Part shown: positions 5,570-62,535 of the stretch, in pieces
How the letters are laid out: the number at the start of each line of letters is the position of its first letter
Position numbering within the stretch: position 1 is the first letter of the stretch
Sequence record: OQ708376.1
DNA: 64,000 nt
Reading direction: 5' to 3' (one strand)
Notes under the pieces: generated by a model
What the model was told of the DNA's origin: nothing
What the model saw: only the letters and a program-made list of their open reading frames with translations
The model's database searches: none
Translations under genes and position numbers: made by a program

Positions 5570-5631
5570 GAGACAAACAAAACATTGGTGATACAATGTT
5601 TTATGACAAAGAGACATGATAAGGAATTCAA

Positions 5632-36193: not shown

Positions 36194-36308
36194 AAATTGG
36201 ACAAGAACAGATATTGTGATATAATGTTTGTTATCGGCAGATATTAAAATGCAAACCATTCCTCAATGATGAGGGTTTTTCATAAAAAAGAAATAAAAGG
36301 GTATTAAA

Positions 36309-40118: not shown

Positions 40119-40454
<336 letters not shown>

Positions 40455-40455
40455 A

Positions 40456-40638: not shown

Positions 40639-40654
40639 ACAAGGAATACAAAAA

Positions 40655-40873
40655 ATGGAAACAACTTTATTAGAAGTTATTCAATCATTAAAACCTGAAG
40701 ATGAGGTTCAAGTACTACTACATGGTTATCGTGTAAAAGGTACTGTGGTTTTAGTCAATGATACAACATTGGTTATTACAGAAACAAACCCATATGATAG
40801 TAATCAACTTGCCAATATCCATATCGATATCACTGGAATTATTGGTGTCGGTGTATCTAAAACACTTGCATAA
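40655..40873 (+). CDS. small protein, possible Sm/Hfq-like fold
   Basis: AAGGA RBS; helix then VQVLLHGYRVKGTVVLVNDTTLVI...IHIDITGIIGV. Confidence 0.6.
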   Translation: METTLLEVIQSLKPEDEVQVLLHGYRVKGTVVLVNDTTLVITETNPYDSNQLANIHIDITGIIGVGVSKTLA

Positions 40874-40906
40874 ATCATTAATTCATTATATAATGGGACA
40901 TAACAT

Positions 40907-41022
<116 letters not shown>

Positions 41023-41026
41023 AATA

Positions 41027-41103
41027 CGGGGTATAGCACAATTGGATAGTGCAAGAGAATTCTAATCTCTAGGTTGGGGGTTCAAGTCCCTCTACCTCGG
41101 CCA
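41027..41103 (+). tRNA. tRNA-Arg(UCU)
   Basis: CGGGGTA/TACCTCG, AGAGA-ATTCTAA-TCTCT, CCA; A32 is atypical. Confidence 0.88.
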
Positions 41104-41126
41104 ATTTTAATTAAAGGTTAAAAACC

Positions 41127-41453
<327 letters not shown>

Positions 41454-41461
41454 AAAAAAAG

Positions 41462-42066
<605 letters not shown>

Positions 42067-42069
42067 TAC

Positions 42070-42229
<160 letters not shown>

Positions 42230-42244
42230 CAATGCGAGGTATAA

Positions 42245-42502
<258 letters not shown>

Positions 42503-42510
42503 GAATTTAA

Positions 42511-42912
42511 ATGAAAAAGAATGACTTGATCAAAATGCTTCAAGAAATTGACGGCAATCCAGAGATTGTTATTTGGAATGGATACGTCGATGATTATATG
42601 AACATCGAAAAAGGCTTGACTAAAATCACTCTAGTCAAAGAAACCGAACAGTTTCTTCAGGGTGCATTAGAGCACGAATGGTGTGAACGTAACAATACAT
42701 TCGACATTCCAGAAGACCAACGAACCAAGATTGCAGAACGTGCTAAAGAACTGCATAAGAAACGCGAATACGATTTCCAGAACCCATATGTCACTGAAGA
42801 CGAATTCAATCGCTGGTACGGTAAAAAGAAATTGACAAAGTATGTCCTTTCACCTAAACTACGTGGTAAGACTTCACTTGGTGTATTCAACGCCGCAGAC
42901 TTAAACTACTAG
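42511..42912 (+). CDS. hypothetical protein
   Basis: AGGA RBS. Confidence 0.75.
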   Translation: MKKNDLIKMLQEIDGNPEIVIWNGYVDDYMNIEKGLTKITLVKETEQFLQGALEHEWCERNNTFDIPEDQRTKIAERAKELHKKREYDFQNPYVTEDEFNRWYGKKKLTKYVLSPKLRGKTSLGVFNAADLNY

Positions 42913-42921
42913 CGGGTATTA

Positions 42922-43471
<550 letters not shown>

Positions 43472-43531
43472 TACAACCGACAATGACGAAAGAACAGTTA
43501 TCAACATTTATCAACGCAGCATTAGATAAAA

Positions 43532-43563
<32 letters not shown>

Positions 43564-43615
43564 TACCAAGCAGCTTGAAGAACTTTGTAGTGCTGCACCT
43601 ATGCCGACTCTTGGC

Positions 43616-43725
<110 letters not shown>

Positions 43726-43728
43726 TCT

Positions 43729-43818
<90 letters not shown>

Positions 43819-49137: not shown

Positions 49138-50292
49138 TTATGCGTTGTAACCAACTATTACGACTGAGCAGTCAAGCGGTTCTACTACTTTAAGAATTAC
49201 ATTATCATCTTCATCCACTTGTATTTCACTATGAACTACATGATTGTCTGAAGAATATAATTGAACTTGTGGTAGTGCTTTACCATGTTCAGTTACTGGA
49301 ACTGAGATAGAGTACATAGAGTCTTCACCGAGAACCCACTCACTTAAAGTATATTCTTTATGGAAAGGAGTAGTATGCAGTGTTTTTCCGATTATACTCA
49401 AAGAAACAGGTAAATTATCAGTTTGATACACAGTAATATTACCTTCTGCGTCTACAGAAAGATCTACACCAACTTGATATAAGTCACCACTGTATGCTTG
49501 AAGTGCTAAGTACTGTCCACGATCATGAACATCAAATGGAACAACCGCAGAAAATACACCTTCCGAAACAGGTTCAAATTGGGATAGAAGAACTGATGTA
49601 ACAAAATCAATATCCTCACCACTTTCAAGAACATCAAATTCCACCACTTTAGTGTTATAATATGGAGAAGTGAGCGTAGCAGTACCTTTCCCTGATTGTG
49701 TGATAACATCAACTGGAATTGTAAATGCATCATTAACAAATTGGGTAGTAAAGTATTCTGTCCCGTCTGGTAATACGATTGTTATTACCATACCGTTAGT
49801 ATCAATTTCTGAACCAGTGTTGAATAATTTACCACTAATTGAGTCATTACCAACAAATACTGGTGAAATGAGAATATTATCTATATCACGATCTATAATA
49901 CCACATTCAGGTGTATACATATGATACAAGGTTTGTGAACTACCTAAAATTGTTTTATGTAGCATAAATTTATATACAAATCCAGTATCAGTTTCTTGTG
50001 GCTCTTCAGAATATCCACGAACAAAGAAACAATTTTTATTAATTTCACTTAATAGTTGGTCATTAGTTTTATTGTAATTTAATAGATAACCTTTATTATC
50101 TTTAGTTGTTATTTGTACTTTACGATATATTATATTAGTTCTTGGATCAACTAAATCATATAATCTATGGCTTCTTTGGCGATAGATTCTAATATTTTTT
50201 AGTCTAGTTCCATCGTTGAGGATTGCACCATCAACAACATAACCACATTCACCAAACTTATAGCGTCCAGCCGCAGCAATTGACCTTGACAT
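49138..50292 (-). CDS. putative virion/tail-fibre-associated protein (Ig-like domain plus two C-terminal repeats)
   Basis: GGAGGGA RBS and ATAAATA late motif (50324-50330) on -; repeats S.VP..H...Q.YS...VD..(G/D)N. Confidence 0.75.
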   Translation of the reverse strand: MSRSIAAAGRYKFGECGYVVDGAILNDGTRLKNIRIYRQRSHRLYDLVDPRTNIIYRKVQITTKDNKGYLLNYNKTNDQLLSEINKNCFFVRGYSEEPQETDTGFVYKFMLHKTILGSSQTLYHMYTPECGIIDRDIDNILISPVFVGNDSISGKLFNTGSEIDTNGMVITIVLPDGTEYFTTQFVNDAFTIPVDVITQSGKGTATLTSPYYNTKVVEFDVLESGEDIDFVTSVLLSQFEPVSEGVFSAVVPFDVHDRGQYLALQAYSGDLYQVGVDLSVDAEGNITVYQTDNLPVSLSIIGKTLHTTPFHKEYTLSEWVLGEDSMYSISVPVTEHGKALPQVQLYSSDNHVVHSEIQVDEDDNVILKVVEPLDCSVVIVGYNA

Positions 50293-50352
50293 TTATCCCT
50301 CCATTGGTATAATTATTATAACGTATTTATTATGCATATCCAAAAAATGAGC

Positions 50353-50381
50353 TTGACTGGTGTATGATTTGGTGTTATCAT
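50353..50381 (+). promoter_or_regulatory. sigma70-like promoter
   Basis: TTGACT-17-TATCAT. Confidence 0.65.
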
Positions 50382-50408
50382 GTAGTGAATGAATAATGAG
50401 GTGTTTTT

Positions 50409-50993
50409 ATGAATGTTATTGATAATAGATTAGTACTGAAAAATGGAAAAATGACTGTTAAGTTATATAAAGATGAAGCTGATTCTTTTATGGCAAAAGC
50501 GATTGAAAAATCAGAACGATATAAACTTTTGGCTCCAGCAAGTAAATCGCCATATGGTTTTAATCATGCACATAGTCATTTTGTTGGTATGGTGTGTGAG
50601 CACGCATCTTTAGTACTTTTTAATGAAATTGAAAACAATACTGGTATTAAACTTAATATCGATCCAGCATTCCAAAATGAAGCACGTGACGGTGAATGTG
50701 ATATTAAGGTAAACAACCTTCGTATTGAAGTAAAAGGTATCAAGTATAAATCATGGACTGACTTTGGACCATGTGTTAGTACTCGACAGTTAAAAAATAT
50801 CCAGAAAAAAGCTGACGTAATACTATGGGTATTGTATAATGAGAAAAAACAAGAGTTCACGTTTGAGGGATTCAACTATGTAAAAGATATTAGTTCTATC
50901 CCAGTTATCCTCACTGGTGTACCAGGGCGACCAATGATTGAAAATCACCCAGTACTCGGTATTATGAAACCACTACAGGAGTTACCATTGTGA
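50409..50993 (+). CDS. putative PD-(D/E)XK nuclease
   Basis: GMVCE...DGECDIKVNNLRIEVKG. Confidence 0.6.
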   Translation: MNVIDNRLVLKNGKMTVKLYKDEADSFMAKAIEKSERYKLLAPASKSPYGFNHAHSHFVGMVCEHASLVLFNEIENNTGIKLNIDPAFQNEARDGECDIKVNNLRIEVKGIKYKSWTDFGPCVSTRQLKNIQKKADVILWVLYNEKKQEFTFEGFNYVKDISSIPVILTGVPGRPMIENHPVLGIMKPLQELPL

Positions 50994-51217
50994 TTACTGC
51001 AACTGTATATCAAGATATCAATGAAGAATTTCATTCTAAAATTGCGTTCTTATCATTTCCTGTACTCCCAGCAGTTGGGTCAACGTTGAATCTTACCATT
51101 TGTGGTTTTGAGAAATATTATAAAGTACTAGATATTGAGTACTGTGCTGATGTATATTCATGTAATAGTGAAATTGCAATTCCAGTATCAATCGATATTA
51201 TTGTAAAAGAGGTTTGA
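50990..51217 (+). CDS. hypothetical protein
   Basis: GTGA coupling with GGAG. Confidence 0.65.
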   Translation: MITATVYQDINEEFHSKIAFLSFPVLPAVGSTLNLTICGFEKYYKVLDIEYCADVYSCNSEIAIPVSIDIIVKEV

Positions 51218-51675
51218 TTATGTTTAAGAATTTTATGGTTATCGTAGCAGTACTGTTTGGTACATCATGTTTCATTTCCCCAGTACACGCAGAAGAACAA
51301 CGTCAAACTATTAAAACTATTGGGACTGGTAAAACTCCCCCTAAACGTACTGCTGAAGAATACATGCCTGAAATGCGTGAACGTTATCGTCAGACATACA
51401 GGGAAAAACATGCTAATGATAAACCCATCAAGAAGCATAAATGGGAAGTTGTTAAATCTCCTTCATTTTGTGCTGGATATGCTAAAGTAAAGATTGAGCA
51501 GCACAAAAACCAGTACTATAAAGATATGTATTCCTTCTATGACTCCAGAATTTCTGACACAGATATGATGGCAGGGAAGGTTGATAAAGAAGAATTTCTA
51601 CAAGGCTATGATATGATGGACGATGACAAAATCATGGAATGCGTTGAAGTGTATGAAAAATACAGAGGCTTCTGA
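51214..51675 (+). CDS. putative exported protein
   Basis: signal-peptide-like N-terminus ending SPVHA. Confidence 0.7.
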   Translation: MIMFKNFMVIVAVLFGTSCFISPVHAEEQRQTIKTIGTGKTPPKRTAEEYMPEMRERYRQTYREKHANDKPIKKHKWEVVKSPSFCAGYAKVKIEQHKNQYYKDMYSFYDSRISDTDMMAGKVDKEEFLQGYDMMDDDKIMECVEVYEKYRGF

Positions 51676-52151
51676 TGTTAACAATAGTGTTGTTGGTTAG
51701 TCCATTTGTGTATTTTGTGCTGTATAATATTTTTAGTAATGCTAATCATTTTAAATATGCACAAACAATTGCAAAGCATGAAGGTTTTTGGAATTTTTTC
51801 CCAGCATTACTATGCTCATATCTATACCATGAACGCTATTTCATTTTTCCTGAATATAAAAATTATGGTTATGATTCTAAAGTAAATGGTATAATTGAGT
51901 ACTGTATAAGAAATTATATTAATAATAATGATAACGTCCAAGTAAGAATAGGAAATGGTAATATATCAAGAATAGTTTTCATACCTGATATACAAGACCC
52001 AATATACTTATATCCATATGATTATAGTATTAGTGTAGGTTGTTCGATACATGGTAGTAAATCTATGTACGATTATTTTATCTTACCACCAACACAAATT
52101 AGATTAATAGAAAAATATTTGAGGGAAAAGTTTGACAACAAAGATTCTTAG
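51675..52151 (+). CDS. membrane-anchored hypothetical protein
   Basis: N-terminal TM; TGATG coupling. Confidence 0.65.
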   Translation: MLTIVLLVSPFVYFVLYNIFSNANHFKYAQTIAKHEGFWNFFPALLCSYLYHERYFIFPEYKNYGYDSKVNGIIEYCIRNYINNNDNVQVRIGNGNISRIVFIPDIQDPIYLYPYDYSISVGCSIHGSKSMYDYFILPPTQIRLIEKYLREKFDNKDS

Positions 52152-52160
52152 TATTATAAT
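52132..52160 (+). promoter_or_regulatory. sigma70 promoter
   Basis: TTGACA-17-TATAAT. Confidence 0.8.
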
Positions 52161-52192
52161 TAACACACCAAGTAACCCAAGGGGGATGGAAA

Positions 52193-52651
52193 ATGGATGT
52201 ATTAGCTACAAATTTCAAACGTAACACAGAAGAGCGTGAAGGTTATTTGAGTATTAGTGAAGTTGTCGATGACAATTTTAAACAATACATTTTTAATAGT
52301 GCAATTAAATTAAAATGCACAAAAGATTCACCTGATCGTAGCTTTACTAAATGGATTGCGTATTGGGAAGATTCACCAGTTGCAATTGAAATGACTGTGA
52401 TTACAACAGTACTTGAAACAGGTTACATCAAAGCCATTATAGTTGATAAGAAAGTCCGTACTCTTGATGAAATTAATCCATATCCAGCCCGAAATTCTAA
52501 AGTTTTTGGTGTGTTGGTTGATGGTAAATTTATGATAGAAAAAGATGCAAAGGAATATGTAATTAATAAACTTCAAACTACATCAGAAAAAAAGGAAGTA
52601 GTGGACCAAAACTCTGTTGATGCAATCAAAAAAGCATGGGGACTAAAGTAA
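52193..52651 (+). CDS. hypothetical protein
   Basis: AAGGGGG RBS. Confidence 0.75.
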   Translation: MDVLATNFKRNTEEREGYLSISEVVDDNFKQYIFNSAIKLKCTKDSPDRSFTKWIAYWEDSPVAIEMTVITTVLETGYIKAIIVDKKVRTLDEINPYPARNSKVFGVLVDGKFMIEKDAKEYVINKLQTTSEKKEVVDQNSVDAIKKAWGLK

Positions 52652-52652
52652 T

Positions 52653-53075
52653 ATGTTCACACTAAGTAATGCAAAATATCTTTTTCTTATTAGTATTATT
52701 GGTTGGGTTATGGCTCCAGTGCTAAATGCACTGGGGTTTTCCGATGAACATAAACTTTTAAATGTTTCAGGTTTAATTCAGGGTATTTCATGGTATACAT
52801 TAATTATATTTTCAGTGTGCATCAATACATTTGCCCGTGATTATCGACGTTTGTTATATCTGAAAGTATTTGGAACTACACGATATAGTTTTGTTTACAC
52901 TTTCATTTTAGTACCGTGTATGTTATATGCATTTGTATTTGATTACTATACATATCTATGGGTATGTGGAACTATGTTTGTTATGTTGGAATACATCAGA
53001 ACTGTTCAAAACTCATATGCCGATGAGTTTCATGATCTAGAAGTTAAACGAAAATTAACGGAGCTAAACAAATGA
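52653..53075 (+). CDS. multi-pass membrane protein
   Basis: about 4 hydrophobic segments. Confidence 0.75.
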   Translation: MFTLSNAKYLFLISIIGWVMAPVLNALGFSDEHKLLNVSGLIQGISWYTLIIFSVCINTFARDYRRLLYLKVFGTTRYSFVYTFILVPCMLYAFVFDYYTYLWVCGTMFVMLEYIRTVQNSYADEFHDLEVKRKLTELNK

Positions 53076-53497
53076 GAGGCTATAATAAGATTTGTATTTT
53101 TGTATTTTTAGTTTGTGCATTCAATTCGTTTGGTTACTACTGTACAGAAAATAATATTTCATATGGTTTAAATCCTTTGTGGTTTACAATTTCCAATGTA
53201 GCACAAATTGGTATTGCTCTTATGTCTGCACTTATGTTCTGTCCAATTGTCACTATGGATACTGATCATGAAAGGCTTGGATTTCTCCGTGATACTGGAG
53301 ACGAACCTTACAGTAGATTGATTGTGTTGTATCCATTTATTGTTATTTTAGGTACTAACATCCAACTTGGGTCATTATCTAATAGTGTTACATCAGCAGC
53401 TATTGCTATATTTGCATTCACATTTTTTATGGTACACAAATCAGTACTTAATTGGTATATCACAAAAATGGCAGAAGAAGGTACTAAAAATACTTGA
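53072..53497 (+). CDS. multi-pass membrane protein
   Basis: about 4 hydrophobic segments. Confidence 0.75.
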   Translation: MRGYNKICIFVFLVCAFNSFGYYCTENNISYGLNPLWFTISNVAQIGIALMSALMFCPIVTMDTDHERLGFLRDTGDEPYSRLIVLYPFIVILGTNIQLGSLSNSVTSAAIAIFAFTFFMVHKSVLNWYITKMAEEGTKNT

Positions 53498-53522
53498 CAT
53501 AATTTAGTATGTTATATATAAT
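53494..53522 (+). promoter_or_regulatory. sigma70 promoter
   Basis: TTGACA-17-TATAAT. Confidence 0.8.
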
Positions 53523-53556
53523 TATTTTGTTAAAAACAAATTAGAGTAAGGAACTT

Positions 53557-53808
53557 ATGAACATCGATAAGGTCAAAGAACTTAGTGCTGCACTAATTAA
53601 GAATGAAGAAGTTTGTGAAGAACTTCGCAGTACTATCAAAGTTGAGTACGCACGACTCCAAGGTATGCTTCAAGAATCAGAATGGGTAGTAACTAAATCT
53701 ATCGAAGCAATCTATAAGGATATCGAATCCCTTTTCAACAAGAAAAGTAAGATTGAATCTGATTCATATAACAAACGTAAAGAGTTATCTACTGCACTTG
53801 GTATCTAA
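53557..53808 (+). CDS. hypothetical coiled-coil protein
   Basis: TAAGGA RBS. Confidence 0.75.
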   Translation: MNIDKVKELSAALIKNEEVCEELRSTIKVEYARLQGMLQESEWVVTKSIEAIYKDIESLFNKKSKIESDSYNKRKELSTALGI

Positions 53809-53814
53809 AAGTAT

Positions 53815-53850
53815 TTGACATAACAAATAATATGGAGTACAATGTGCTCC
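53815..53850 (+). promoter_or_regulatory. sigma70 promoter with hairpin across the -10
   Basis: TTGACA-17-TACAAT; GGAGTAC-AAT-GTGCTCC. Confidence 0.75.
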
Positions 53851-53882
53851 TAATTTAATTATCAGCTAAAAAGGAAAACATT

Positions 53883-54143
53883 ATGAAATCTATTCTCGTT
53901 GCAGTTAACCTGGTTGCTTCCCCATCTTTCAACTTCAAACAAGTTGTTGCTGATAATCTGAAGAAGATCTGTCCAAACGCTGAATTGACTTTCTGTGTAT
54001 TTGATTCAGAAAAAGTAACTAAAGTTGATCTAAACTATCTTTTGAACGAAGTACAAAGCGTTTCTGGTGAAAGTAACTTAAAAGTTCTTCATGAGATTGC
54101 AGAAGATTATGATGACACTCTAGTAATTTCGGAGAAATTCTAA
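53883..54143 (+). CDS. hypothetical protein
   Basis: AAGGA RBS. Confidence 0.75.
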   Translation: MKSILVAVNLVASPSFNFKQVVADNLKKICPNAELTFCVFDSEKVTKVDLNYLLNEVQSVSGESNLKVLHEIAEDYDDTLVISEKF

Positions 54144-54148
54144 ATCAA

Positions 54149-54568
54149 ATGATTACATTCATTCAGTACTTAATCATTAAATTTTTTGGCTATTATACGA
54201 TTGAGGGCAAAGCTACGCTTGCACATAAAATCTTTGTAGCATTATGTACGGGTGATTATGACGTATTGAATAAGTACTGTAAATCTAAAGAATGTATTGA
54301 TATAATGGCACTTCGTATCTATGAGTGCCGATCCAATAGATACAATTTTTACCAGTACAGATTTGATAAAGAAGAATTTGATAGCATCAAAATGCTAAAG
54401 AATTTATGTAACAATAAAAAGAATATGCATATATCAGAATTTGTTGCTTTGTATTTTTATTTAAAAAGTTCATTGTATATGAACACGATGCAAAGATTCG
54501 ATACTAGAATTAATGTATTCACCGATAAAGAATTTTATATATACGATAAATTCTTAGATAAGGTTTAA
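54149..54568 (+). CDS. hypothetical protein
   Basis: GGAG RBS. Confidence 0.7.
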   Translation: MITFIQYLIIKFFGYYTIEGKATLAHKIFVALCTGDYDVLNKYCKSKECIDIMALRIYECRSNRYNFYQYRFDKEEFDSIKMLKNLCNNKKNMHISEFVALYFYLKSSLYMNTMQRFDTRINVFTDKEFYIYDKFLDKV

Positions 54569-54569
54569 T

Positions 54570-55067
54570 ATGACAACTGTTTATATTGATAAACGATTAA
54601 ATTTATTGATTACCGATTCTAGAGTTACGTCAACTATACCACGAAACTTATTTGGTTTTTTCCCACTAAGACCAAAATATCAATATGGAGTTGTTAATCA
54701 AAAAACTTTATATGTACATGACCGTTTATTCAGTGCTAGTGGGTCAGTAAGTGAAATTGATAAAGTACTGGATTGGTTAATTAATAAAGTACCAGTTATA
54801 CCTGACAGAAAGTTAAGTTGCCATTGTGTGCTTCTTTCTAAAGATTATGTTATTCATATGATTTTAACTAAAGGAAAGTTTATTAAAAAACTTGAATATC
54901 TACATGAAGACTACACTTTCTTTATGGGAAGTGGTGGAGAATACATGGTAGATGCTGCTATTCATGAAGAACATACAACTTTATATGATAAAGTGTTTAG
55001 TACTTTCATGGATGTGCATAACCATGATTGCTTCACAGATGATAATATTAATGTATATCGATTTTGA
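54570..55067 (+). CDS. HslV/proteasome-beta-like Ntn peptidase
   Basis: N-terminal (M)TT, ITDSRVT, SASGS, FMGSGG. Confidence 0.65.
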   Translation: MTTVYIDKRLNLLITDSRVTSTIPRNLFGFFPLRPKYQYGVVNQKTLYVHDRLFSASGSVSEIDKVLDWLINKVPVIPDRKLSCHCVLLSKDYVIHMILTKGKFIKKLEYLHEDYTFFMGSGGEYMVDAAIHEEHTTLYDKVFSTFMDVHNHDCFTDDNINVYRF

Positions 55068-55088
55068 TTTCGTCATTAGGAGATGTAA

Positions 55089-56054
55089 GTGAAAAAGCTT
55101 GATTTAAATACAATTGCCGAAGAAGTTCTGGATGAATGTTTTTCTAATGAAGAAGTCAACACACTAGAAGCCTTAGATTTCGTTGAAGATAAAGATGAAA
55201 ATGAAGGTAAAGTACAAAGCAGTTTCAAATATAATATTACACTTAAGCGACCACCAAATGTTTCCAATGAAGATCTAATTCGTGATATTCAAGCTGGTAT
55301 CAATGTAAAGAAAAACACTGAACTGTTAGTTCGTTACAATTATGGACTTATTATTGATGTAGCAAGTAAATGTACTTGTTATATCCCATTTGAAGATAAG
55401 ATTTCATATGGTGTTGAGGGGTTCATGAGAGCACTAAAAACCTTTGATCTTAATAAGAATGTGAAGTTCATTACCTATGCTTCTTCTAGTATTTACATGA
55501 CAGTTTATAACGAAAGTTCTGACGCTAACTATATGGTACACTTCCCACGTTATATGAGTGTTCATAAGATCAAAGTAAAAAGATTCTGTCAGGAATATAT
55601 GCGTAAACATGGTGTTCGCCCAACTCCTGAAATAATCTCAGAGGGTACTGGGATTGAGATTCAGCATGTTAATAACTGTTTGTTATTTCAAAGCGAATAC
55701 ACTTCTCTGGATGCACCATTAGACGGTGTTACCGATGGTACACTAGGTGACATTATTCATTCACCTGCTTCTGATTTTAACCTCAATGTTGATAGTATTC
55801 GTGCACCTTTACGTTATGCTATCAATGAACTGACTAACGAATTGAGTACTAAAGAACGTGAGATTATCCAGCGTGTTCATGGTCTAGGTGAATATGAACC
55901 TGAAACGCTTCGTGAGATTGCTGATAATGGTTTTGTTGATGATAATGGAAAATATGTTAAATCCCGTTCATCAATACACCGAAAGTACAGTGAAGCTATG
56001 CAAAAGCTTAAGAAGTTAGTACTTGCAAAAGGGTACGAATACGAAGATTTCTAA
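55089..56054 (+). CDS. RNA polymerase sigma70-family factor (regions 2-4)
   Basis: LLVRYNYGLI..VA, FEDKISYGVEGF.RA.KTFD...KFITYA, RPTPEII, SLDAPL, LSTKEREII..HGL...TLREIA; GTG start after AGGAG. Confidence 0.9.
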   Translation: MKKLDLNTIAEEVLDECFSNEEVNTLEALDFVEDKDENEGKVQSSFKYNITLKRPPNVSNEDLIRDIQAGINVKKNTELLVRYNYGLIIDVASKCTCYIPFEDKISYGVEGFMRALKTFDLNKNVKFITYASSSIYMTVYNESSDANYMVHFPRYMSVHKIKVKRFCQEYMRKHGVRPTPEIISEGTGIEIQHVNNCLLFQSEYTSLDAPLDGVTDGTLGDIIHSPASDFNLNVDSIRAPLRYAINELTNELSTKEREIIQRVHGLGEYEPETLREIADNGFVDDNGKYVKSRSSIHRKYSEAMQKLKKLVLAKGYEYEDF

Positions 56055-56060
56055 AGAACA

Positions 56061-56088
56061 AGGGTTGGCTTATGCCAACCTTTTTTTT
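56061..56088 (+). terminator. intrinsic terminator after the sigma gene
   Basis: AGGGTTGGC-TTAT-GCCAACCTT-TTTTTT. Confidence 0.85.
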
Positions 56089-56124
56089 ATGGGATGAAGT
56101 AAAAGTTTGTGATATAATTATCTT

Positions 56125-56598
56125 GTACAATTCTGTTGGCATGATATTCATGTACCTGATCCACTCGAAAACGTAGAGGGCAGTTGAGCAGTCCGACAGT
56201 GCGAACAGCAAAAGAAACCCGTTAGATGTGGGCATAGTTTGAACCCCTCACGGCAATGCGGCTGTATAAAGAACCACGTTAGGATAGCTGGTGGTTCCTT
56301 GATAGACATATAAGGATAACACCTTACGAATTATCTAAGGGAGAGTTATCGAATTTTGTACAGGAAAGTTGCGTCCAAAATTTGAGTACTCACATTAAGT
56401 ATTTGATTGCATAGATACTTAATGAAGATACACTATGTTTAAAAGTGTAGACCGTCATATGAAACTGAAGTAGAGAGAAACAGGATGACCCGCTTTCGCA
56501 CTCGTTATGAGTAATCTTCAATGCAATAGCTCTGATACCATCAGCGTCAAATTTCCCTCCTTGTGGGGGGAAGAAAAATCCCTTCCTCAAATCCCGTC
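56125..56598 (+). ncRNA. candidate large structured ncRNA (~470 nt)
   Basis: extended -10 TGATATAAT (56110-56118); no + ORF of 60 aa or more; more than 10 complementary helices including a 5'-to-internal long-range stem. Confidence 0.65.
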
Positions 56599-56612
56599 AA
56601 TATTAAAAGTCC

Positions 56613-56641
56613 TTGACAGTTATTAATCATTCGCGTAGAAT
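56613..56641 (+). promoter_or_regulatory. sigma70 promoter
   Basis: TTGACA-17-TAGAAT. Confidence 0.75.
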
Positions 56642-56705
56642 ACGTAGTATTAGAAGCGAACAGACATCTCGAAGAGATGGATGATTAACCATTAAGGAAT
56701 ATCAA

Positions 56706-56915
56706 ATGAATTCAGTAATCTTTTTAGTAGTCGCTTTCTCTGTTAATTCCGGTGTACAAATAACCCCAATGAATTCCATGAATCAATGCATAGCAGTACG
56801 TGATAGTACATACGAACAAGTAAACAAAGATATTTGGATTACAGTTAGTAAAGAACAAATGTGGTGTTACAATAGTAATACTAACACAAAGCTTATTGTA
56901 GGACAAACTCAATGA
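56706..56915 (+). CDS. small exported-type protein with two Cys
   Basis: hydrophobic N-terminus; S..QC...WCY; resembles 60474-60674. Confidence 0.7.
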   Translation: MNSVIFLVVAFSVNSGVQITPMNSMNQCIAVRDSTYEQVNKDIWITVSKEQMWCYNSNTNTKLIVGQTQ

Positions 56916-57142
56916 GTTATGGCGTTCGTTTTGAGATTCGTTCTATTGTCATCAATGCAGAGAAACAAGTATCGTTGGATGGTGATATACGTGAAATTTA
57001 TCTATCATGTATCCGTGCGAAATCTGAAGCAGATGCCTTAGTACAAATGTATAGTTTTAACTTTTCAAATGGATTCTATTTGGTACGAGTTATTGAAGTG
57101 AAAAAAGTACTTATTGGTTGTAGCATAGAAGGATTAATGTAA
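56912..57142 (+). CDS. small hypothetical protein (A...DA family)
   Basis: IRAKSEADALVQM. Confidence 0.7.
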   Translation: MSYGVRFEIRSIVINAEKQVSLDGDIREIYLSCIRAKSEADALVQMYSFNFSNGFYLVRVIEVKKVLIGCSIEGLM

Positions 57143-57143
57143 A

Positions 57144-57932
57144 ATGAGCACTATAGATGAACTGATTCGACGGAATTCAAAATATTACCAACCATCAGAA
57201 ATTGTAGGTAACATTACCAAATCAGAGTTTGGTCCAAATACTCGAAAACTCATTCATGTAATGTCACGTGATGGCTTTAAATGTGATTGTTGCGGTGAAT
57301 CTAATGTAGTATTCACTTTACACAAGCACAGTACTAAAGATCGTTATAAATTCAGACCTTATGTACTTAAAGGGAAACGCCTTGTACGCATGACGTTAGA
57401 CCATAATGTACTGGACTGTCTTCAGGGCGGTAATGATAAAGAGAACATGACTGCACTGTGTGAAGATTGTAACGCATTACGCCAGCATAAGTTTGCTGAA
57501 TACAGTGAGTTTAAACACTGGTATAATAACGCGGATCGTTCAATCGAGCCTGACGTTAACTACTGCTTCATTGAGTACATTAAGAATGCCAAAGATACAT
57601 ACATTCTTAAATCAATGTCACCTATTACCGTGTTTCCTGAGAACCTATTCACTACATTAAAGAATAGTTTTATTGTAGGTGATATTGATGCATTCAAGTA
57701 TTTTGACAAAGGTGCAAAACATTTTGAAATTCAATGTCTTAGTACTGCACTATGTGAACTCATTAAAATTTACATAAAAGAGTATTTGGGTATTGACAAT
57801 GTACGTGTACCAGAGTATACTTTTTCTATTGAATTCGATTGTGAATCAATCAAAGAGTTTGGAATTCTTTTCAATAAACAAATAGAACTTGCAATTCAAA
57901 ACGAAATCAAGTACTATACTACTAACATTTAA
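57144..57932 (+). CDS. HNH endonuclease with Zn finger
   Basis: RDGFKCDCCG...TLDHNV...GGNDKENMTALCEDCN. Confidence 0.8.
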   Translation: MSTIDELIRRNSKYYQPSEIVGNITKSEFGPNTRKLIHVMSRDGFKCDCCGESNVVFTLHKHSTKDRYKFRPYVLKGKRLVRMTLDHNVLDCLQGGNDKENMTALCEDCNALRQHKFAEYSEFKHWYNNADRSIEPDVNYCFIEYIKNAKDTYILKSMSPITVFPENLFTTLKNSFIVGDIDAFKYFDKGAKHFEIQCLSTALCELIKIYIKEYLGIDNVRVPEYTFSIEFDCESIKEFGILFNKQIELAIQNEIKYYTTNI

Positions 57933-57947
57933 TCAGAGGAAATTATC

Positions 57948-58130
57948 ATGCAAATTATCATTCTTATCGTTGGCATCATGCTGGGTGTTTACGGTCACTC
58001 CTGGATGAACGAGAAGTTTCCTAATACGCGTCCTGAGTATTGCAGTTCTAATGTATTCCAGAATGGTGAGAAACCAAAGGAAAGCATTGGTAAAAAGCTG
58101 GATAAAGTACTTGATGTGATCAATGAATAA
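57948..58130 (+). CDS. small membrane/secreted protein
   Basis: GAGGA RBS; N-terminal TM. Confidence 0.7.
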   Translation: MQIIILIVGIMLGVYGHSWMNEKFPNTRPEYCSSNVFQNGEKPKESIGKKLDKVLDVINE

Positions 58131-58341
58131 GGGCCATAAAATGTTTAAACCGAATTCCAATGTTGGTAAGAAAGTTCAATTACTTGAAGATGTATCCACC
58201 ATGAGTGGAATTTTCCCAAGAGGTCACATCATGACTATTATTGCCGAAACATCCCGTGGGTGGGATTTGGAAGATGCTGATGGTAATCGCATCCTTGAGG
58301 CTGGATTCTATGGTCATCGTGAATATAAAATCGTTGATTAA
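58123..58341 (+). CDS. hypothetical SH3-like protein
   Basis: VGKKVQLL...RGHIMTII...RGWDLED. Confidence 0.65.
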   Translation: MNKGHKMFKPNSNVGKKVQLLEDVSTMSGIFPRGHIMTIIAETSRGWDLEDADGNRILEAGFYGHREYKIVD

Positions 58342-58350
58342 GGATACAAC

Positions 58351-58434
58351 ATGACTTTAGAGATTGTCTTTGGTATTGTTAGCTTAGTCGTCTGTGTGGG
58401 TTGGTTTGGGTATCTGATGATTTTTAGTGATTAA
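58351..58434 (+). CDS. hydrophobic micro-ORF (27 aa)
   Basis: TAAGGA RBS; MTLEIVFGIVSLVVCVGWFGYLMIFSD. Confidence 0.5.
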   Translation: MTLEIVFGIVSLVVCVGWFGYLMIFSD

Positions 58435-58437
58435 TAC

Positions 58438-58465
58438 TTGACATAAGATATCAGTACTGTATAAT
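58438..58465 (+). promoter_or_regulatory. promoter with CAGTACTG abutting the -10, 16-bp spacer
   Basis: TTGACA-TAAGATATCAGTACTG-TATAAT. Confidence 0.75.
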
Positions 58466-58510
58466 GTTTATATCAAACGAAATCCACTTTAACAAATGAT
58501 AGGAAATATT

Positions 58511-58789
58511 ATGTCTTTTTCTAAAGAAGAACGTGACCTTATTAAAAAAGCAATCTGGTTTTATGCTAATGAAGGGAAGTGCGATGAAGAAAAAGCACGT
58601 GAACTGTGTAATATCTTTGAGAAGAAACAAGATCTAAAAGTGTATCGTATCCGTGATTTGGATGAAGGGGATCGTATTGTCCTAGCTGAAACAAAAGAAG
58701 AAGCAGAACAAATCTTCACTGATAAAAACGAAAATCCACATTGGATGGAAGAAGTCTGTGATGTTAAAAAAGGTACTTATATCGATTGA
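58511..58789 (+). CDS. hypothetical protein
   Basis: AGGA then ATG 58511. Confidence 0.7.
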   Translation: MSFSKEERDLIKKAIWFYANEGKCDEEKARELCNIFEKKQDLKVYRIRDLDEGDRIVLAETKEEAEQIFTDKNENPHWMEEVCDVKKGTYID

Positions 58790-58884
58790 CAGTACTGAAT
58801 AATAGCAGTATTATGTTTTATATAAAAGGGAATGCAGTGAAAGGAAAGACAGCATAATCGTACTCGTCACTGCGTTCCCGCCCT
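58786..58884 (+). promoter_or_regulatory. sigma70 promoter followed by a 13-bp leader hairpin
   Basis: TTGACA-17-TATTAT; GGGAATGCAGTGA/TCACTGCGTTCCC then GCCCTTTT. Confidence 0.65.
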
Positions 58885-58908
58885 TTTAAATTAAATGAGG
58901 AATTAACT

Positions 58909-59217
58909 ATGTTTCAAACTAACACTCAAGGTTTTGTAATCATCGATTTGAATCAAAACAGCGGTCATTGGATGAAACCTACTGACGCATGTATGCAGTT
59001 TGATTTCTTAGGTTACAAAATTAGTGTAAGTACTGGTGCTTCTGTACTGAGAGGTGGTTGTATCGTTGAACATCTGGTAACTGATCCAGAAGGTCGTGAG
59101 TATGAAATCGCAGGTTCAGTACAAGATGCCATTATGTTTGTATGTCAGCGTGAAATGAATGGTTCGAATTCAAATGCACTGACTCATGCTCTTTCTCAAG
59201 AAGTGGAGGTTCGTTAA
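58909..59217 (+). CDS. hypothetical protein
   Basis: GAGGA RBS. Confidence 0.75.
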   Translation: MFQTNTQGFVIIDLNQNSGHWMKPTDACMQFDFLGYKISVSTGASVLRGGCIVEHLVTDPEGREYEIAGSVQDAIMFVCQREMNGSNSNALTHALSQEVEVR

Positions 59218-59462
59218 TGAAATACATTGTAGCAGTACTCGTCGCATTTCTACTCACTGCATGTGATGCTTCTACCAAAGAACGTACAAGTGATTTTGTT
59301 CTACCTGCTGAATTAAAAGAAGCAGGGTGTAAGATTTATCGTATGCAACAAGATGGTGCTGGTGCGACTTTATACACTGTGTACTGTCCTAATGCAAATA
59401 CAAGTACTGGATACACTAGCGGTAAAACACGAATCAACACTTCCGTAATTCATGGAGAATAA
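59217..59462 (+). CDS. putative lipoprotein
   Basis: lipobox LTAC after a hydrophobic signal. Confidence 0.75.
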   Translation: MKYIVAVLVAFLLTACDASTKERTSDFVLPAELKEAGCKIYRMQQDGAGATLYTVYCPNANTSTGYTSGKTRINTSVIHGE

Positions 59463-59464
59463 CA

Positions 59465-59833
59465 ATGAGCCTTGATACAACACGTGCAGCAGATTTATTA
59501 ACTCGTCTGAATGATGAAGAATATCTTGCTGAGATAAAGTACAAGCTTGACAAACTTGTTCGAAGTGCTGAAGTAATTGAAGTTGAAGGTCACTTACCGA
59601 TGGATCAATACCATAGGTTCAAGGAAGATATGGTTTATTATCCTAATGAAATTTGGATTGAGTGGCAACATTGGACTAACAAAACTCTTCGCATTGAAGG
59701 GTATTGTGTGAAGTATGAAAGTTCACCTGGTGATGTTACAAAAACTCTATCAATTTGGTGTACAAAAACAAATGAACTCGTTGAGGTGAATTTGAATTAT
59801 ATGAATGGATTCCGTTGGGGTGATGTTAAATGA
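59465..59833 (+). CDS. hypothetical protein
   Basis: GGAG RBS. Confidence 0.7.
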   Translation: MSLDTTRAADLLTRLNDEEYLAEIKYKLDKLVRSAEVIEVEGHLPMDQYHRFKEDMVYYPNEIWIEWQHWTNKTLRIEGYCVKYESSPGDVTKTLSIWCTKTNELVEVNLNYMNGFRWGDVK

Positions 59834-60105
59834 TTAAAAAACTCTTGACTGGAATCATTGTGTGCAGTACAATGTTTCTTACAGCATGTAATGATGACGG
59901 CAGGTTTAGTGCAAAAGACTTAGTTCGTCAGGATTGTACATTCACAGGTAAGTCTTTTATTAACGAGTATGAAATATGTACACAATCAGGTCGTATCTGT
60001 GGTGGTTGGGAAAAACGTCAGGAGCGATTGTATGTATATGAATGCCCTGGACATCACAACAAAGTACTAAGCACACACAAACTTGTTTATGATAAGGTTG
60101 AATAA
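59830..60105 (+). CDS. putative lipoprotein
   Basis: lipobox LTAC; additional Cys residues. Confidence 0.75.
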   Translation: MIKKLLTGIIVCSTMFLTACNDDGRFSAKDLVRQDCTFTGKSFINEYEICTQSGRICGGWEKRQERLYVYECPGHHNKVLSTHKLVYDKVE

Positions 60106-60320
60106 TGACTACCAATGAAATGATGCAGGTTATTTGGGATAAAGGTTGTGATATTAAAATCACTAGTACTGATGTTCGTGTATTCAAAACTGAATATATG
60201 GAGTACTTGGACCTTGATACTTATAATAATATTGTATCAATTGAACACAAAGGTGCAGTACTGGAAACCATTGACGTAGTACTCAAGAAAGCTACCGACC
60301 TATTAGGAGTGGCAGTGTGA
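60105..60320 (+). CDS. hypothetical protein
   Basis: TAATG coupling. Confidence 0.7.
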   Translation: MTTNEMMQVIWDKGCDIKITSTDVRVFKTEYMEYLDLDTYNNIVSIEHKGAVLETIDVVLKKATDLLGVAV

Positions 60321-60463
60321 ATAACAAAGAGTGGGAAGATTACCGCAAGAAGTGCAGGGAGTTTGATAAAGAACTTACTGGTACAGTGAATGCAGTAATG
60401 TGGGTATCTGTAATTATTGCAGTTCTTGCGTTGGGTGCTATTATTATTAATAAATTATTCTAA
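60317..60463 (+). CDS. small C-terminally anchored membrane protein (48 aa)
   Basis: AGGAG, GTGA coupling. Confidence 0.55.
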   Translation: MNNKEWEDYRKKCREFDKELTGTVNAVMWVSVIIAVLALGAIIINKLF

Positions 60464-60473
60464 GGCGAATATC

Positions 60474-60674
60474 ATGTTTACTTTATATCTCGCAGTAGTT
60501 CTCACCAATGGTGAAATCACTCGTACTATTGGTGAAGGTGTATATAAAACACCAGACCAGTGCTACTCTGCCACTCATTGGCCTCGCGATAGTGGGGATG
60601 AAACTCGCACTGAATTCAAATGCATGAAAGTAAAAGGTGATTTTGTTAACCTTAAGGTTATCGAGGCGAAATAA
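60474..60674 (+). CDS. small exported-type protein with two Cys
   Basis: MFTLYLAVVLTNG...TPDQC...FKCM. Confidence 0.65.
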   Translation: MFTLYLAVVLTNGEITRTIGEGVYKTPDQCYSATHWPRDSGDETRTEFKCMKVKGDFVNLKVIEAK

Positions 60675-61192
60675 TGGATATTAATGAGTTGTTGAAATTA
60701 GTGTTTAATCGTGAACGCCGCGATACAAGACCAATTGAATATCAAGATGTGATACGCATTGAAACTGATTTCTGTTATGGTAAAACAACTCATGACCTTT
60801 TGAATCTCTCTGGAAAACGCTATGCTGATGTTTGTTTTTCAGAGAGAAGTGATGGTTCAGAAATAACGAGTACTGATATTGTTTGTTACGCACGCAGTGC
60901 TGATAAATCTTATGAAATAGAACTTATATATTCCCCTAGTTCTAAAACAAATCATCACCGCCATATTTTATATGATGTTTACACACCACCTGGTATTGCT
61001 GAATATTTTGTTATTGATTATAGTACTGAAGAAAATGTGTTTCAACAAAGTTTGATTCATAACTTTGAGGTGAATGATCCATTAGTACCAAAGTTGTTCA
61101 AACTACTTGACACCATCGATGTTGATTTTGAATTTGTTATGTGCATTAGAACTTCTTTATTCAATGAATTCATGGAACTTTTTAATATATGA
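60674..61192 (+). CDS. EExxFQ-family protein
   Basis: STEENVFQQSLIHNF. Confidence 0.75.
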   Translation: MDINELLKLVFNRERRDTRPIEYQDVIRIETDFCYGKTTHDLLNLSGKRYADVCFSERSDGSEITSTDIVCYARSADKSYEIELIYSPSSKTNHHRHILYDVYTPPGIAEYFVIDYSTEENVFQQSLIHNFEVNDPLVPKLFKLLDTIDVDFEFVMCIRTSLFNEFMELFNI

Positions 61193-61410
61193 ATAGATAC
61201 TATGTTGTGTATGAACACGTCTCTGAATTTAATAACATACGCGGGTTTTCCAGAGTAGTCACCAAGATGGATGTATTCATTCGTGCTCTTAGTGAAGTAG
61301 ATGCACTGTTTAAATTGTTTGATGAAATTACAAAGTATAACACACCTAAAACACACCGCTATGTGGAAACTGTACATAGCATTATGCTAACTGAAAGTGA
61401 TGAGGAATGA
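61189..61410 (+). CDS. small hypothetical protein (A...DA family)
   Basis: FIRALSEVDALFKL. Confidence 0.7.
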   Translation: MNRYYVVYEHVSEFNNIRGFSRVVTKMDVFIRALSEVDALFKLFDEITKYNTPKTHRYVETVHSIMLTESDEE

Positions 61411-61413
61411 TAA

Positions 61414-61632
61414 ATGAATTTATATCTAGTTGAAGGTTTAGTACAAGTCTATAAACCAGAAGGTGAAGGTCAACGTTTTTCACACGTAGAAGAATTTAAG
61501 TACGTTGTACAGGCTGATGGTCAGTACGATGCGGAAATTCAAGTAGATGAATCATTCCGTAAGAAAAATGAAATTGGTAAATTTCAATACCAGAACTTAC
61601 AATATAAAGTATGGCCTAGTATAAATGACTAA
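61414..61632 (+). CDS. small hypothetical protein (A...DA family)
   Basis: VVQADGQYDAEIQV. Confidence 0.7.
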   Translation: MNLYLVEGLVQVYKPEGEGQRFSHVEEFKYVVQADGQYDAEIQVDESFRKKNEIGKFQYQNLQYKVWPSIND

Positions 61633-61840
61633 GATGTGGTGGTGTCATGGTGTATATAACGTGTATGTAAATGGTAGATATAAAATGTCTAGTACCTATG
61701 CAAGACGTGTTAATGCGAACAACCAAGTTGATGCTGCTTGTGAGATCATTGAGTGGTATGCTGAGTTCAATGCACCTGACTATATGTACGAAATAGTTAC
61801 AATAAATGTTGTACAAATCGATACATCTTTGATACAATAA
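61625..61840 (+). CDS. small hypothetical protein (A...DA family)
   Basis: RVNANNQVDAACEI. Confidence 0.65.
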   Translation: MTKMWWCHGVYNVYVNGRYKMSSTYARRVNANNQVDAACEIIEWYAEFNAPDYMYEIVTINVVQIDTSLIQ

Positions 61841-61872
61841 CCACATCAAAAAAATTGCATCTGAGGATACTT

Positions 61873-62535
61873 ATGTTAGTTAATCTTAATTTCATCACTT
61901 CACCTGACTGGGCATTACGTGGAGTTTCTTTAAACTTCAAGGAAACTATGTTTGACTACATTGGTGAGTGTACATTGGTAAATGCAACTTTTGATCCAAA
62001 TCATCCGTTTTGGGCTGAAATTCATGATCCAAATGTAAACAACAATACATCTGTTATGACTATTGTCCAGACTAAACATGCAGGTATCCTTGCAGGTTAT
62101 CGACCTGCACATGCAATTGAACACTTCACTGATTACGATGTCGTGGATGAATACCCAATGATCCATGAAGATGGAAGTCTATACACATCTGAAGACTTCC
62201 GTGCTATCTTTAATAGTACTGATGATATTCTACCAAGTGGACGTCCACGTCCTGAGTCTTATCTTATGCATCCATCTTATGGTGTAGCAGATACGCTTGA
62301 ACAGATTATGAATAAGTACAAGAACCTAATTGAAGGTCCAGAAGAAATTGTCCTGTGCTATCACCCAGTACTGAAGTCTGAACAACCAAAGGATGGTGGA
62401 TGGCGTTGGCATAAGAATGGTGAGTATATCGGTACTAAACGAAGTAAAGAACGTTTTGAGTACTTGTATGATGAGCCAGATGTTGATGTGGTTTTGTGTT
62501 ATAATTTTATTAAGGTGAAAAAGAAATGTATCTAG
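61873..62535 (+). CDS. hypothetical phage protein with GWRWHK motif
   Basis: GAGGA then ATG 61873; YGVADT.EQ, QPKDGGWRWHKNGEYIG. Confidence 0.8.
   Translation: MLVNLNFITSPDWALRGVSLNFKETMFDYIGECTLVNATFDPNHPFWAEIHDPNVNNNTSVMTIVQTKHAGILAGYRPAHAIEHFTDYDVVDEYPMIHEDGSLYTSEDFRAIFNSTDDILPSGRPRPESYLMHPSYGVADTLEQIMNKYKNLIEGPEEIVLCYHPVLKSEQPKDGGWRWHKNGEYIGTKRSKERFEYLYDEPDVDVVLCYNFIKVKKKCI

Follow-up and report, generated by a model that had tools for sequence, protein, structure and literature searches.

The stretch of DNA analysed here (64,000 nucleotides of sequence record OQ708376.1, referred to as the window) carries a gene for a 321-residue RNA polymerase sigma factor of a jumbo coliphage. As judged from sequence comparisons, this protein is probably a middle-gene sigma factor with strict promoter recognition, acting in a cascade of early, middle and late transcription. 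Three lines of evidence carry this reading: a distinct promoter class in related phage genomes, a -35-like box in that class that changes together with the recognition helix in region 4.2 of the sigma factor, and the placement of these promoters ahead of replication genes and the gene for a late sigma factor.

A second promoter class and its covariation with the recognition helix

Upstream-region k-mer enrichment was run on the 121Q record, and the sites were then listed. This record, of 348,532 bp, has the sigma gene at the coordinates of 121Q KM507819 and served for all 121Q-side genome analyses; RaK2, CBB, Munch and XaC1 were compared alongside it as complete records. The enriched motifs were a host-type TTGACA/TATAAT pair, a T4-late-like [AC]TAAATA, a terminator-like hairpin and GGGACA. 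A second promoter class, here called class B, was identified in all five genomes: a -35-like hexamer is followed, after a spacer of 16/17 bp, by an extended -10 element that hardly varies. In this phage the hexamer and the -10 element read (t)GGGACA(a) and (G)TGnTATAAT, respectively. The pattern GACA-N12-15-TGnTATAAT occurs 24 times on the + strand of the 121Q record versus 0 times on the - strand.

The dominant -35 hexamers of the five lineages are given in Table 1. For 121Q, Munch, RaK2 and CBB they were obtained with TGnTATAAT alone as the anchor, and for XaC1 by unbiased k-mer analysis. The XaC1 genome showed no enrichment of TGnTATAAT; the unbiased analysis gave its own -10 element, TATACT with a TGT[TC]C extension. 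Region 3.0 of the XaC1 sigma factor reads S-N-D, versus S-V-N/H in the other lineages, and the extended -10 and region 3.0 of XaC1 may form a second covariation.

Table 1. Class B promoter elements, recognition-helix sequences and W-dyad columns (W433/W434 of E. coli RpoD) in Rak2-like lineages
Lineage	-35-like box (sites)	-10 element	Recognition helix	W-dyad columns
121Q/this phage	GGGACA (10 sites)	(G)TGnTATAAT	SRSSIHRKY	S-S
Munch	GGGACA (25 sites)	TGTGA-TATAAT	SRTSLHRCY	T-A
RaK2	TGAACA (11 sites)	(G)TGA-TATAAT	VRGTLHYKF	A-S
CBB	TGAAAC (29 sites)	TGTGG-TATAAT	SKATLSRRY	T-T
GAP32				T-T
XaC1	TGAAACG-N10-TGT[TC]C-TATACT (about 22 sites)		SKPTLSRRY	T-S
pEa19				T-A

Lineages with the same helix type have the same box, including lineages on either side of the deepest division in the sigma tree. 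The maximum-likelihood tree separates (Munch,(XaC1,(pEa19,GAP32,CBB))), supported at 99/99, from a clade of this phage and RaK2, supported at 96/96, and the two GGGACA lineages (the 121Q type and Munch) fall on opposite sides of this deepest well-supported split. This is most simply explained if GGGACA/SRxSxHR was the ancestral pair and box and helix changed together twice, independently in RaK2 and in the clade of XaC1 and CBB. Genetics ties R584 of sigma-70 to C at -31. In the phage sigma factors the residue at the R584 column has stayed arginine in lineages whose box has C at the base matching -31, and is lysine in those with A there. For XaC1, the box had been predicted from the helix before the genome was inspected. 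Two metagenomic contigs with SRS-type helices each have one xGGACA-N17-TATAAT site, which is weak evidence with n = 1 for each contig. The orthologous promoter ahead of the gp55-like gene carries GGGACA, TGAATA, GGGACA and TGGAAC in 121Q, RaK2, Munch and CBB, respectively. One sigma-70 is common to the enterobacterial hosts, and the reader of the box must therefore be phage-encoded.

The genes located directly after class B promoters in the 121Q record encode a single-stranded DNA-binding protein (with two tandem promoters), DNA primase, an exonuclease, a Nudix hydrolase, a head maturation protease and the gp55-like late sigma factor. The gp55-like gene (phrog_12791) was found in all four genomes searched, with a class B promoter ahead of it. 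In the 121Q record it spans 321985-322824 and encodes 279 residues (phrog_12791, 2.7e-154). The protein is about 100 residues longer than T4 gp55, for which the reference was taken from NC_000866, and only its C-terminal part (125-262) matches the T4 family. Part of this pattern has been described before: a "divergent RpoD-like promoter", TGAAACG plus TATA, was reported for CBB and GAP32 and lies in CBB ahead of DNA-synthesis and gp55-like genes, according to the section of PMC5259590 that deals with this motif. We were able to find the motif again in CBB at about 35 sites, ahead of DNA-synthesis genes and the gp55-like gene.

The class B promoters have an exact -10 element more often than the host-type promoters. 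With only the -35 hexamer as the anchor, the -10 was exact in 42/49 class B sites (86%), versus 72/151 TTGACA-anchored host-type sites (48%; Fisher p = 2e-6). Alternative sigma factors with fewer melting residues need near-consensus promoters (Koo et al. 2009, as cited in a passage of PMC10911233), and the high exactness is the pattern expected of a sigma factor with reduced melting capacity, although it bears on this sigma factor only through the assignment of class B to it, which we infer. The sequence-only reading had proposed, as one of two possibilities, an altered-specificity sigma factor for a phage promoter class. This has indirect computational support from the orientation-specific class in 5/5 genomes, from the covariation of box and helix, and from the replication and late-sigma targets.

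Three class B or class B-like promoters of the window are listed in Table 2. A cluster of seven tRNA genes lies at window positions 40141-43808 (Gly, Ser twice, Arg, Met, Asn and Thr). The class B promoter of the cluster stands directly ahead of tRNA-Ser(tga), and two host-type promoters stand ahead of tRNA-Ser(gct).

Identification and domain organization of the sigma factor

The open reading frame (ORF) at 55089-56054 begins with a GTG start codon and has an AGGAG Shine-Dalgarno sequence 7 nt upstream. The window belongs to a jumbo coliphage of the Asteriusvirus type (121Q/PBECO4/CRJP21, Rak2-like). Over window positions 50000-62000, identity is 100% to Escherichia phage vB_EcoM_CRJP21 and 98-99.5% to slurp01, E9.1, phAPEC6, PBECO4 and 121Q. 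The sigma gene is present at 99-100% identity in 21 phage records, where it is annotated as RNA polymerase sigma factor (121Q gene 167).

The protein matched phrog_351, "RNA polymerase sigma factor", at 2.3e-60, and the Pfam models Sigma70_r3, Sigma70_r4 and Sigma70_r2 at 2e-9, 3e-5 and 7e-5, respectively. Sigma70_r3 scored 37.8 bits, above its cut-off of 25.3. Sigma70_r2 covered residues 80-140 and scored 22.9 bits, slightly below the 24-bit cut-off; in six-frame searches the orthologues were above it (25.4 bits in the 121Q record and 55.8 in Munch). Sigma70_r4 matched residues 251-279 only, with 23.9 bits against a cut-off of 24.1, and the match breaks off at an insert described below. No Pfam match to Sigma70_r1_1 or Sigma70_r1_2 was found in the 321 residues. 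Among the NCBIfam models, the superfamily model TIGR02937 reached 44.7 bits (cut-off 42.9), RpoD_Cterm reached 6e-25 with 88 bits against 354, and PRK05658 reached 64 bits against 555, with all equivalog cut-offs far out of reach. PDB sigma chains were matched by phmmer down to 5e-17; the best NCBIfam and PDB similarities were to RpoD, SigB and RpoS, and the HMMER alignment to RpoS spans region 4.2 (residues 80-314 versus 96-322).

An AlphaFold2 (AF2) model was built on 12 homologues. Its mean predicted local distance difference test score (pLDDT) is 61, and the helical domains are confident. Foldseek against the PDB returned sigma chains or sigma-containing RNA polymerase entries for all of the top 50 matches (E down to 5e-10, probability 1.00). 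The TM-scores were low (0.23-0.27) because the domain arrangement of the free model differs. By sequence and predicted fold, the protein is thus a member of the sigma-70 family. Its sequence does not place it with the group 1 primary sigma factors (RpoD), as there is no W-dyad and no region 1.1 and the scores lie below the equivalog cut-offs; with two of four melting residues gone and regions 2, 3 and 4 present, it is a group 3-like alternative sigma factor in the functional sense (definition as given in PMC10911233).

The N-terminal part aligned weakly to the RpoS N-terminus and region 1.2. Residues 1-51 have pLDDT below 50, and K2, L4, D5, L6, N7, I9, V13, L14 and F18 are invariant in the 12 homologues. 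In region 2.2 RpoD DLIQEGNIGLM aligned to DKISYGVEGFM, a divergent segment that is nonetheless conserved within the Rak2-like family. The domain boundaries are given in Table 2.

Table 2. Predicted features of the window (positions are those of the 64,000-nucleotide stretch)
Feature	Position	Strand	Basis or counterpart
Sigma-70-family sigma factor gene, 321 aa, 121Q gp167 orthologue	55089..56054	+	ORF, family scans
Conserved N-terminal helix (residues 6-18) and acidic disordered linker, then only a degenerate region 1.2-like stretch	55089..55262	+	
Sigma region 2 (residues 80-140), 2.2 core-binding segment divergent	55326..55508	+	Pfam Sigma70_r2
Region 2.3/2.4 segment (residues 126-141)	55464..55511	+	Alignments
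Sigma region 3 (residues 162-226)	55572..55766	+	Pfam Sigma70_r3
Sigma region 4 (residues 251-313)	55839..56027	+	Pfam Sigma70_r4 on 251-279; AF2
8-residue insert D284-K291 in the helix-turn-helix (HTH) turn, predicted beta-hairpin tip	55938..55961	+	MAFFT, AF2
Start of region 4.2 recognition helix (S292-S301)	55962..55991	+	Alignment
Class B promoter TGGACA-N16-TATAAT, GTGA extended -10	36198..36225	+	Orthologous site 68631 in 121Q record
Class B promoter GGGACA-N16-TATAAT, GTGA extended -10, directly 5' of tRNA-Ser (40933)	40895..40922	+	
Class B-like promoter GAGACA-N16-TACAAT, GTGA extended -10	5570..5597	+	Orthologous site 38013 in 121Q record
Host-type promoter TTGACA-N16-TATAAT, start of the + strand block holding the sigma gene	50286..50313	+	
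Host-type promoter (TTGACA, 16-17 bp, TATAAT or TACAAT), upstream of the sigma gene	52132		
Consensus host-type promoter TTGACA-N17-TATAAT, about 1.6 kb upstream of the sigma gene, same block	53494..53522	+	
Host-type promoter TTGACA-N17-TACAAT, about 1.25 kb upstream of the sigma gene	53815..53843	+	

Loss of the tryptophan dyad and an insert in region 4.2

The protein was aligned with RpoD, RpoS, RpoH and FliA of E. coli (NC_000913.3) using MAFFT L-INS-i, and with PDB sigma chains using phmmer. Both methods yielded the same columns as the by-eye alignment of the sequence-only reading and bore out each of the replacements it had proposed. RpoD K426-R441 aligned to residues 126-141. F427 and Y430 correspond to F127 and Y130, so that two of the four melting residues are retained, while W433 and W434 are replaced by S133 and S134; the HMM alignment likewise placed serine, and no aromatic residue, at both W-dyad positions. 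In the same segment R436, Q437, T440 and R441 correspond to Y136, M137, Y140 and N141, respectively. The equivalents of H455 and E458 are also changed. Y136 and Y140 are on the helix face that carries position 433 and may take over part of the role of the wedge, to judge from the alignment; Y136 is confined to the Asteriusvirus and RaK2 clade, and Y140 is absent in RaK2.

In region 4.2, the insertion of about eight residues noted earlier was recovered as D284-K291 between the two HTH helices by MAFFT, by the HMMER alignments spanning RpoS, which require the identical 8-residue gap, and by the AF2 model. In the model, region 4 has block pLDDT values of 83-88, and helices 274-280 and 293-313 are separated by a beta-hairpin with strands 282-283 and 289-290. 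Mycobacterial SigA gave one local HMMER alignment that enters the insert without a gap, but this alignment ends there and is unsupported by the AF2 model. The replacement of TRERIRQIE by SRSSIHRKY after the insertion held in the alignment: T583, R584, E585, R586, I587, R588, Q589, I590 and E591 of RpoD correspond to S292, R293, S294, S295, I296, H297, R298, K299 and Y300, respectively. The R584 equivalent is thus retained, and the equivalents of E585, R586, R588 and Q589 are S, S, H and R.

Both features are shared by the whole family. RaK2, Munch, CBB and XaC1 orthologues (31-44% identity) were recovered with tblastn, a word-based protein search having missed them. The gene is single-copy and conserved in all Rak2-like genera sampled, at 31-100% identity, and its product is the sole Sigma70_r2 match above the Pfam cut-off in each of six genomes (121Q record, RaK2, Munch, CBB, XaC1 and pEa19). 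The pEa19 genome has an additional sub-threshold Sigma70_r2 match (11.7 bits), which is broken by a stop. R293, S294, H297, R298 and Y300 of the recognition helix are invariant in the 12 homologues, down to 48% identity, as are the melting residues F127 and Y130. The W-dyad columns contain S, T or A in all Rak2-like lineages (Table 1). These small residues in every lineage, together with the conserved helix residues, indicate that the features are not due to chance. The R436/Q437 columns are R-Q in Munch, GAP32, CBB, pEa19 and the basal metagenomic sequence P0012, and the Y-M state is therefore specific to the clade of Asteriusvirus and RaK2.

The HTH insert is also family-wide, with the signature G-[FY]-x-D-x-x-G-K/N. 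Among the next-closest 16 homologues, two of which sit on contigs longer than 300 kb, W is present at the W434 position in 14, mostly as W-W. The insert was absent in 15/15 more distant homologues alignable over region 4.2 (P0013-P0022 and P0024-P0028; P0023 ends earlier). Since the W-dyad loss and the insert are family-wide yet rare or absent in the next-closest homologues, both are derived characters of the Rak2-like clade. The earlier implication that loss of the W-dyad is rare was overstated: at these columns host FliA has Q-R, without either tryptophan, and RpoH has H-W, and the loss is normal in group 3 sigma factors (PMC10911233).

Proposed transcription cascade

Small genes without a known function make up the long + strand block in which the sigma gene lies. 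Host-type consensus promoters are located upstream of it in the same block (Table 2), and the gene is therefore probably transcribed early by the host sigma-70 holoenzyme. In the proposed cascade, this holoenzyme would transcribe the early region including the phage sigma gene. The phage sigma factor is predicted to bind host core RNA polymerase and would steer it to the class B promoters as "middle" promoters, which we assign to this sigma factor and not to another factor. Region 4.2, with its hairpin-bearing HTH and re-specified recognition helix, would read the lineage-specific -35-like box. Region 2, without the melting-wedge tryptophans, would depend on a near-perfect extended -10, giving a stringency like that of group 3 sigma factors. 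Transcription from class B promoters would then cover the replication genes, the tRNAs and the gene of the gp55-like late sigma factor, which would read the TAAATA late promoters. The order would thus be host sigma-70, phage RpoD-like sigma factor and gp55-like sigma factor. Group 2 jumbo phages have no RNA polymerase of their own and rely on phage sigma factors (Iyer et al., PMC7824862).

Evidence against the cascade and alternative explanations

Several observations weigh against this cascade. The perfect TGnTATAAT of class B is probably usable by host sigma-70 without a -35 box, and the host holoenzyme may read these promoters partly or wholly. Their -10 element is the host consensus, though the residues reading position -12 (Q437, T440 and R441) are changed in the aligned phage sequence, and the -10 hexamer shows no difference that parallels Y/M versus R/Q between the clades. 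The covariation consists of just two independent changes among five lineages, and the box might instead be read by a phage DNA-binding protein that has escaped recognition. A search for RNA-sequencing runs turned up no infection time course; the single raw-read RNA run aligned 0 reads, and contigs from wastewater metatranscriptomes matched fragments that show neither starts nor strand. In addition, the core-binding residues of region 2.2 are divergent in sequence, and the AF2 model is only moderate overall by its mean pLDDT.

The use of the -10 by the host and the changed -12-reading positions would both fit a working phage sigma factor that serves other promoters or a host-type subset, while class B is read by host sigma-70 through the extended -10 with a phage activator on the box. 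T4 middle promoters, which have an activator box in place of the -35, provide the precedent. We regard this arrangement as unlikely. No match to AsiA (PF09010) was found in four genomes and none to the MotA C-terminal domain (PF09158, MotCF) in five, each at E up to 1 with Pfam models that would miss unrelated activators, and a T4-style appropriation of sigma is weakened by this result. The spacing of the box, 16/17 bp, is the canonical one for a sigma factor, and the box varies together with the region 4.2 helix; the upstream k-mer enrichment found no orphan promoter-like class besides the host-type, class B and late TAAATA motifs.

The second possibility of the sequence-only reading was a melting-defective decoy or competitor, which would hold host core polymerase or displace sigma-70 and shut off the host without initiating transcription. 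The missing W433/W434 equivalents and the position of the gene in the early host-takeover region fit such a role. In a primary sigma factor, Y430 and W433 substitutions impair the nucleation of melting and mutation of W433/W434 is highly deleterious (PMC10911233). A decoy is nevertheless very improbable because the DNA-reading residues R293, S294, H297, R298 and Y300 and the melting residues F127 and Y130 are invariant down to 48% identity, and a pure core-binder would not need them. Many functional alternative sigma factors, including host FliA, lack the tryptophans, and a matching promoter class exists. The decoy proposal is thus unsupported, with the recognition-helix residues and the F427/Y430 equivalents kept and a tryptophan loss that is normal in FliA. 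Equally improbable is an accessory gene of host origin, RpoS/RpoD-like and without an essential part in the phage programme, for example one modulating host stress genes. The best similarities, to RpoD, SigB and RpoS, would agree with it, and cellular acquisition of RpoD-like jumbo-phage sigma factors has been suggested (Iyer et al., PMC7824862). Against it stand the retention of a single copy across all the Rak2-like genera sampled, the clade-specific derived features of the sigma factor, and -35-reading residues unlike those of any host sigma factor.

Comparison with known sigma factors and cascades

E. coli RpoD and RpoS share with the phage sigma factor the order of regions 2, 3 and 4, give its best sequence and fold matches, and have the F427, Y430 and R584 equivalents in common with it; the cognate -10 also appears to be TATAAT with a TG extension. 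Unlike RpoD and RpoS, the phage protein has S133/S134 at the W-dyad, changed Q437/T440/R441 and H455/E458 equivalents, an 8-residue hairpin in the HTH turn of region 4.2, and S/S/H/R for E585/R586/R588/Q589. Unlike RpoD, it is without region 1.1 and the non-conserved domain. The group 3 sigma factors FliA (sigma-28) and RpoH (sigma-32) have likewise lost some of the four melting residues, and the promoters proposed for the phage sigma factor are near-invariant. The phage sequence is closer to RpoD/RpoS than to the FliA/SigF models; its proposed -10 is the housekeeping consensus and not a distinct motif, and the HTH insert is absent from the group 3 sigma factors compared.

The SPO1 cascade runs through gp28 and then gp33/34, and T4 gp55 is a late sigma factor. 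The cascade proposed here resembles these in that an early phage sigma factor would send host core polymerase to middle promoters, with a late sigma gene among the middle genes. SPO1 gp28 is a much smaller and more divergent sigma factor than the Rak2-like one. T4 differs in using AsiA/MotA appropriation for its middle genes, neither of which was found in the Rak2-like genomes searched. For the Rak2-like phages the cascade is a prediction from sequence.

The sigma factor does not represent a new kind of system: alternative sigma factors and cascades of phages are textbook knowledge, and the gene is already annotated. Redirection of the host polymerase by this known gene class is already assumed in the Sharanji paper (PMC11895373) and by Iyer et al. 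(PMC7824862). The "divergent RpoD-like promoter" of CBB and GAP32 is class B; the section of PMC5259590 that describes it neither assigns the motif to a phage sigma factor nor reports lineage differences in step with the region 4.2 helix. We found no description of the family-wide W-dyad loss, the hairpin in the HTH turn of region 4.2, or lineage-specific -35 boxes that track the recognition helix.

Neighbouring genes and other sequence elements

The ORF directly upstream of the sigma gene (54570-55067) encodes 165 residues and belongs to phrog_24804, with a weak match to the HslV-family peptidases (phrog_1040, 4.9e-6). After the sigma gene, window positions 56066-56700 contain no long ORF over about 640 bp. 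The contig depth in this gap is 123, versus about 25-60, and joints and loose ends lie at 56201-56386, the pattern expected of an element that varies or is multi-copy. An HNH endonuclease, possibly a homing element, is encoded two genes beyond the gap at 57144-57932 (phrog_35175, 8e-187).

The stem-loop repeat GGTTGACTTCGGTCAGCC, which was enriched upstream of genes in the 121Q record, was rejected as a promoter and judged to be a terminator-like hairpin. With its UUCG tetraloop it is followed by a T-run and then TATAAT, forming 8-11 terminator-plus-promoter junctions between small genes at about 98.7-112.8 kb of the 121Q record. It is absent from the 64-kb window. The palindrome CAGTACTG occurs at 25 window sites (for example 41477, 41955, 58452 and 62366) versus 0.63 expected from shuffles. 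Many copies adjoin a host-type -10 element (GTACTG-TATAAT), and in the 121Q record AGTACT stands next to the -35 as well (AAAAAGTACTTGCA). The palindrome may be a target for a regulator or a nuclease, or may belong to hairpin stems.

Implications for Rak2-like phages

The Rak2-like sigma factors constitute a natural experiment in two respects. A sigma factor like those of groups 1 and 2 has lost the tryptophan wedge and apparently retained a TATAAT -10, and a region 4.2 with an unprecedented insert has helix residues that track three -35 boxes. Tentatively, and with less confidence than the middle-gene role itself, these sigma factors may be natural orthogonal sigma/promoter pairs, in which the region 4.2 hairpin and a few helix residues set GGGACA, TGAACA or TGAAAC and the tryptophan-less region 2 opens only a perfect TG-extended TATAAT. 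If so, the W-dyad wedge would be dispensable for -10 melting at consensus promoters, and the residues of a novel type of sigma region 4 would map directly, as a code, onto the bases they read. Such pairs could become orthogonal expression parts. Rak2-like jumbo phages (121Q, PBECO4, RaK2 and CBB, among others) are being isolated for therapy. For their gene-expression programme the analysis offers a concrete, testable wiring, in which host sigma-70 would lead to an early phage sigma factor, this to replication genes, tRNAs and a late sigma factor, and the late sigma factor to the virion genes.

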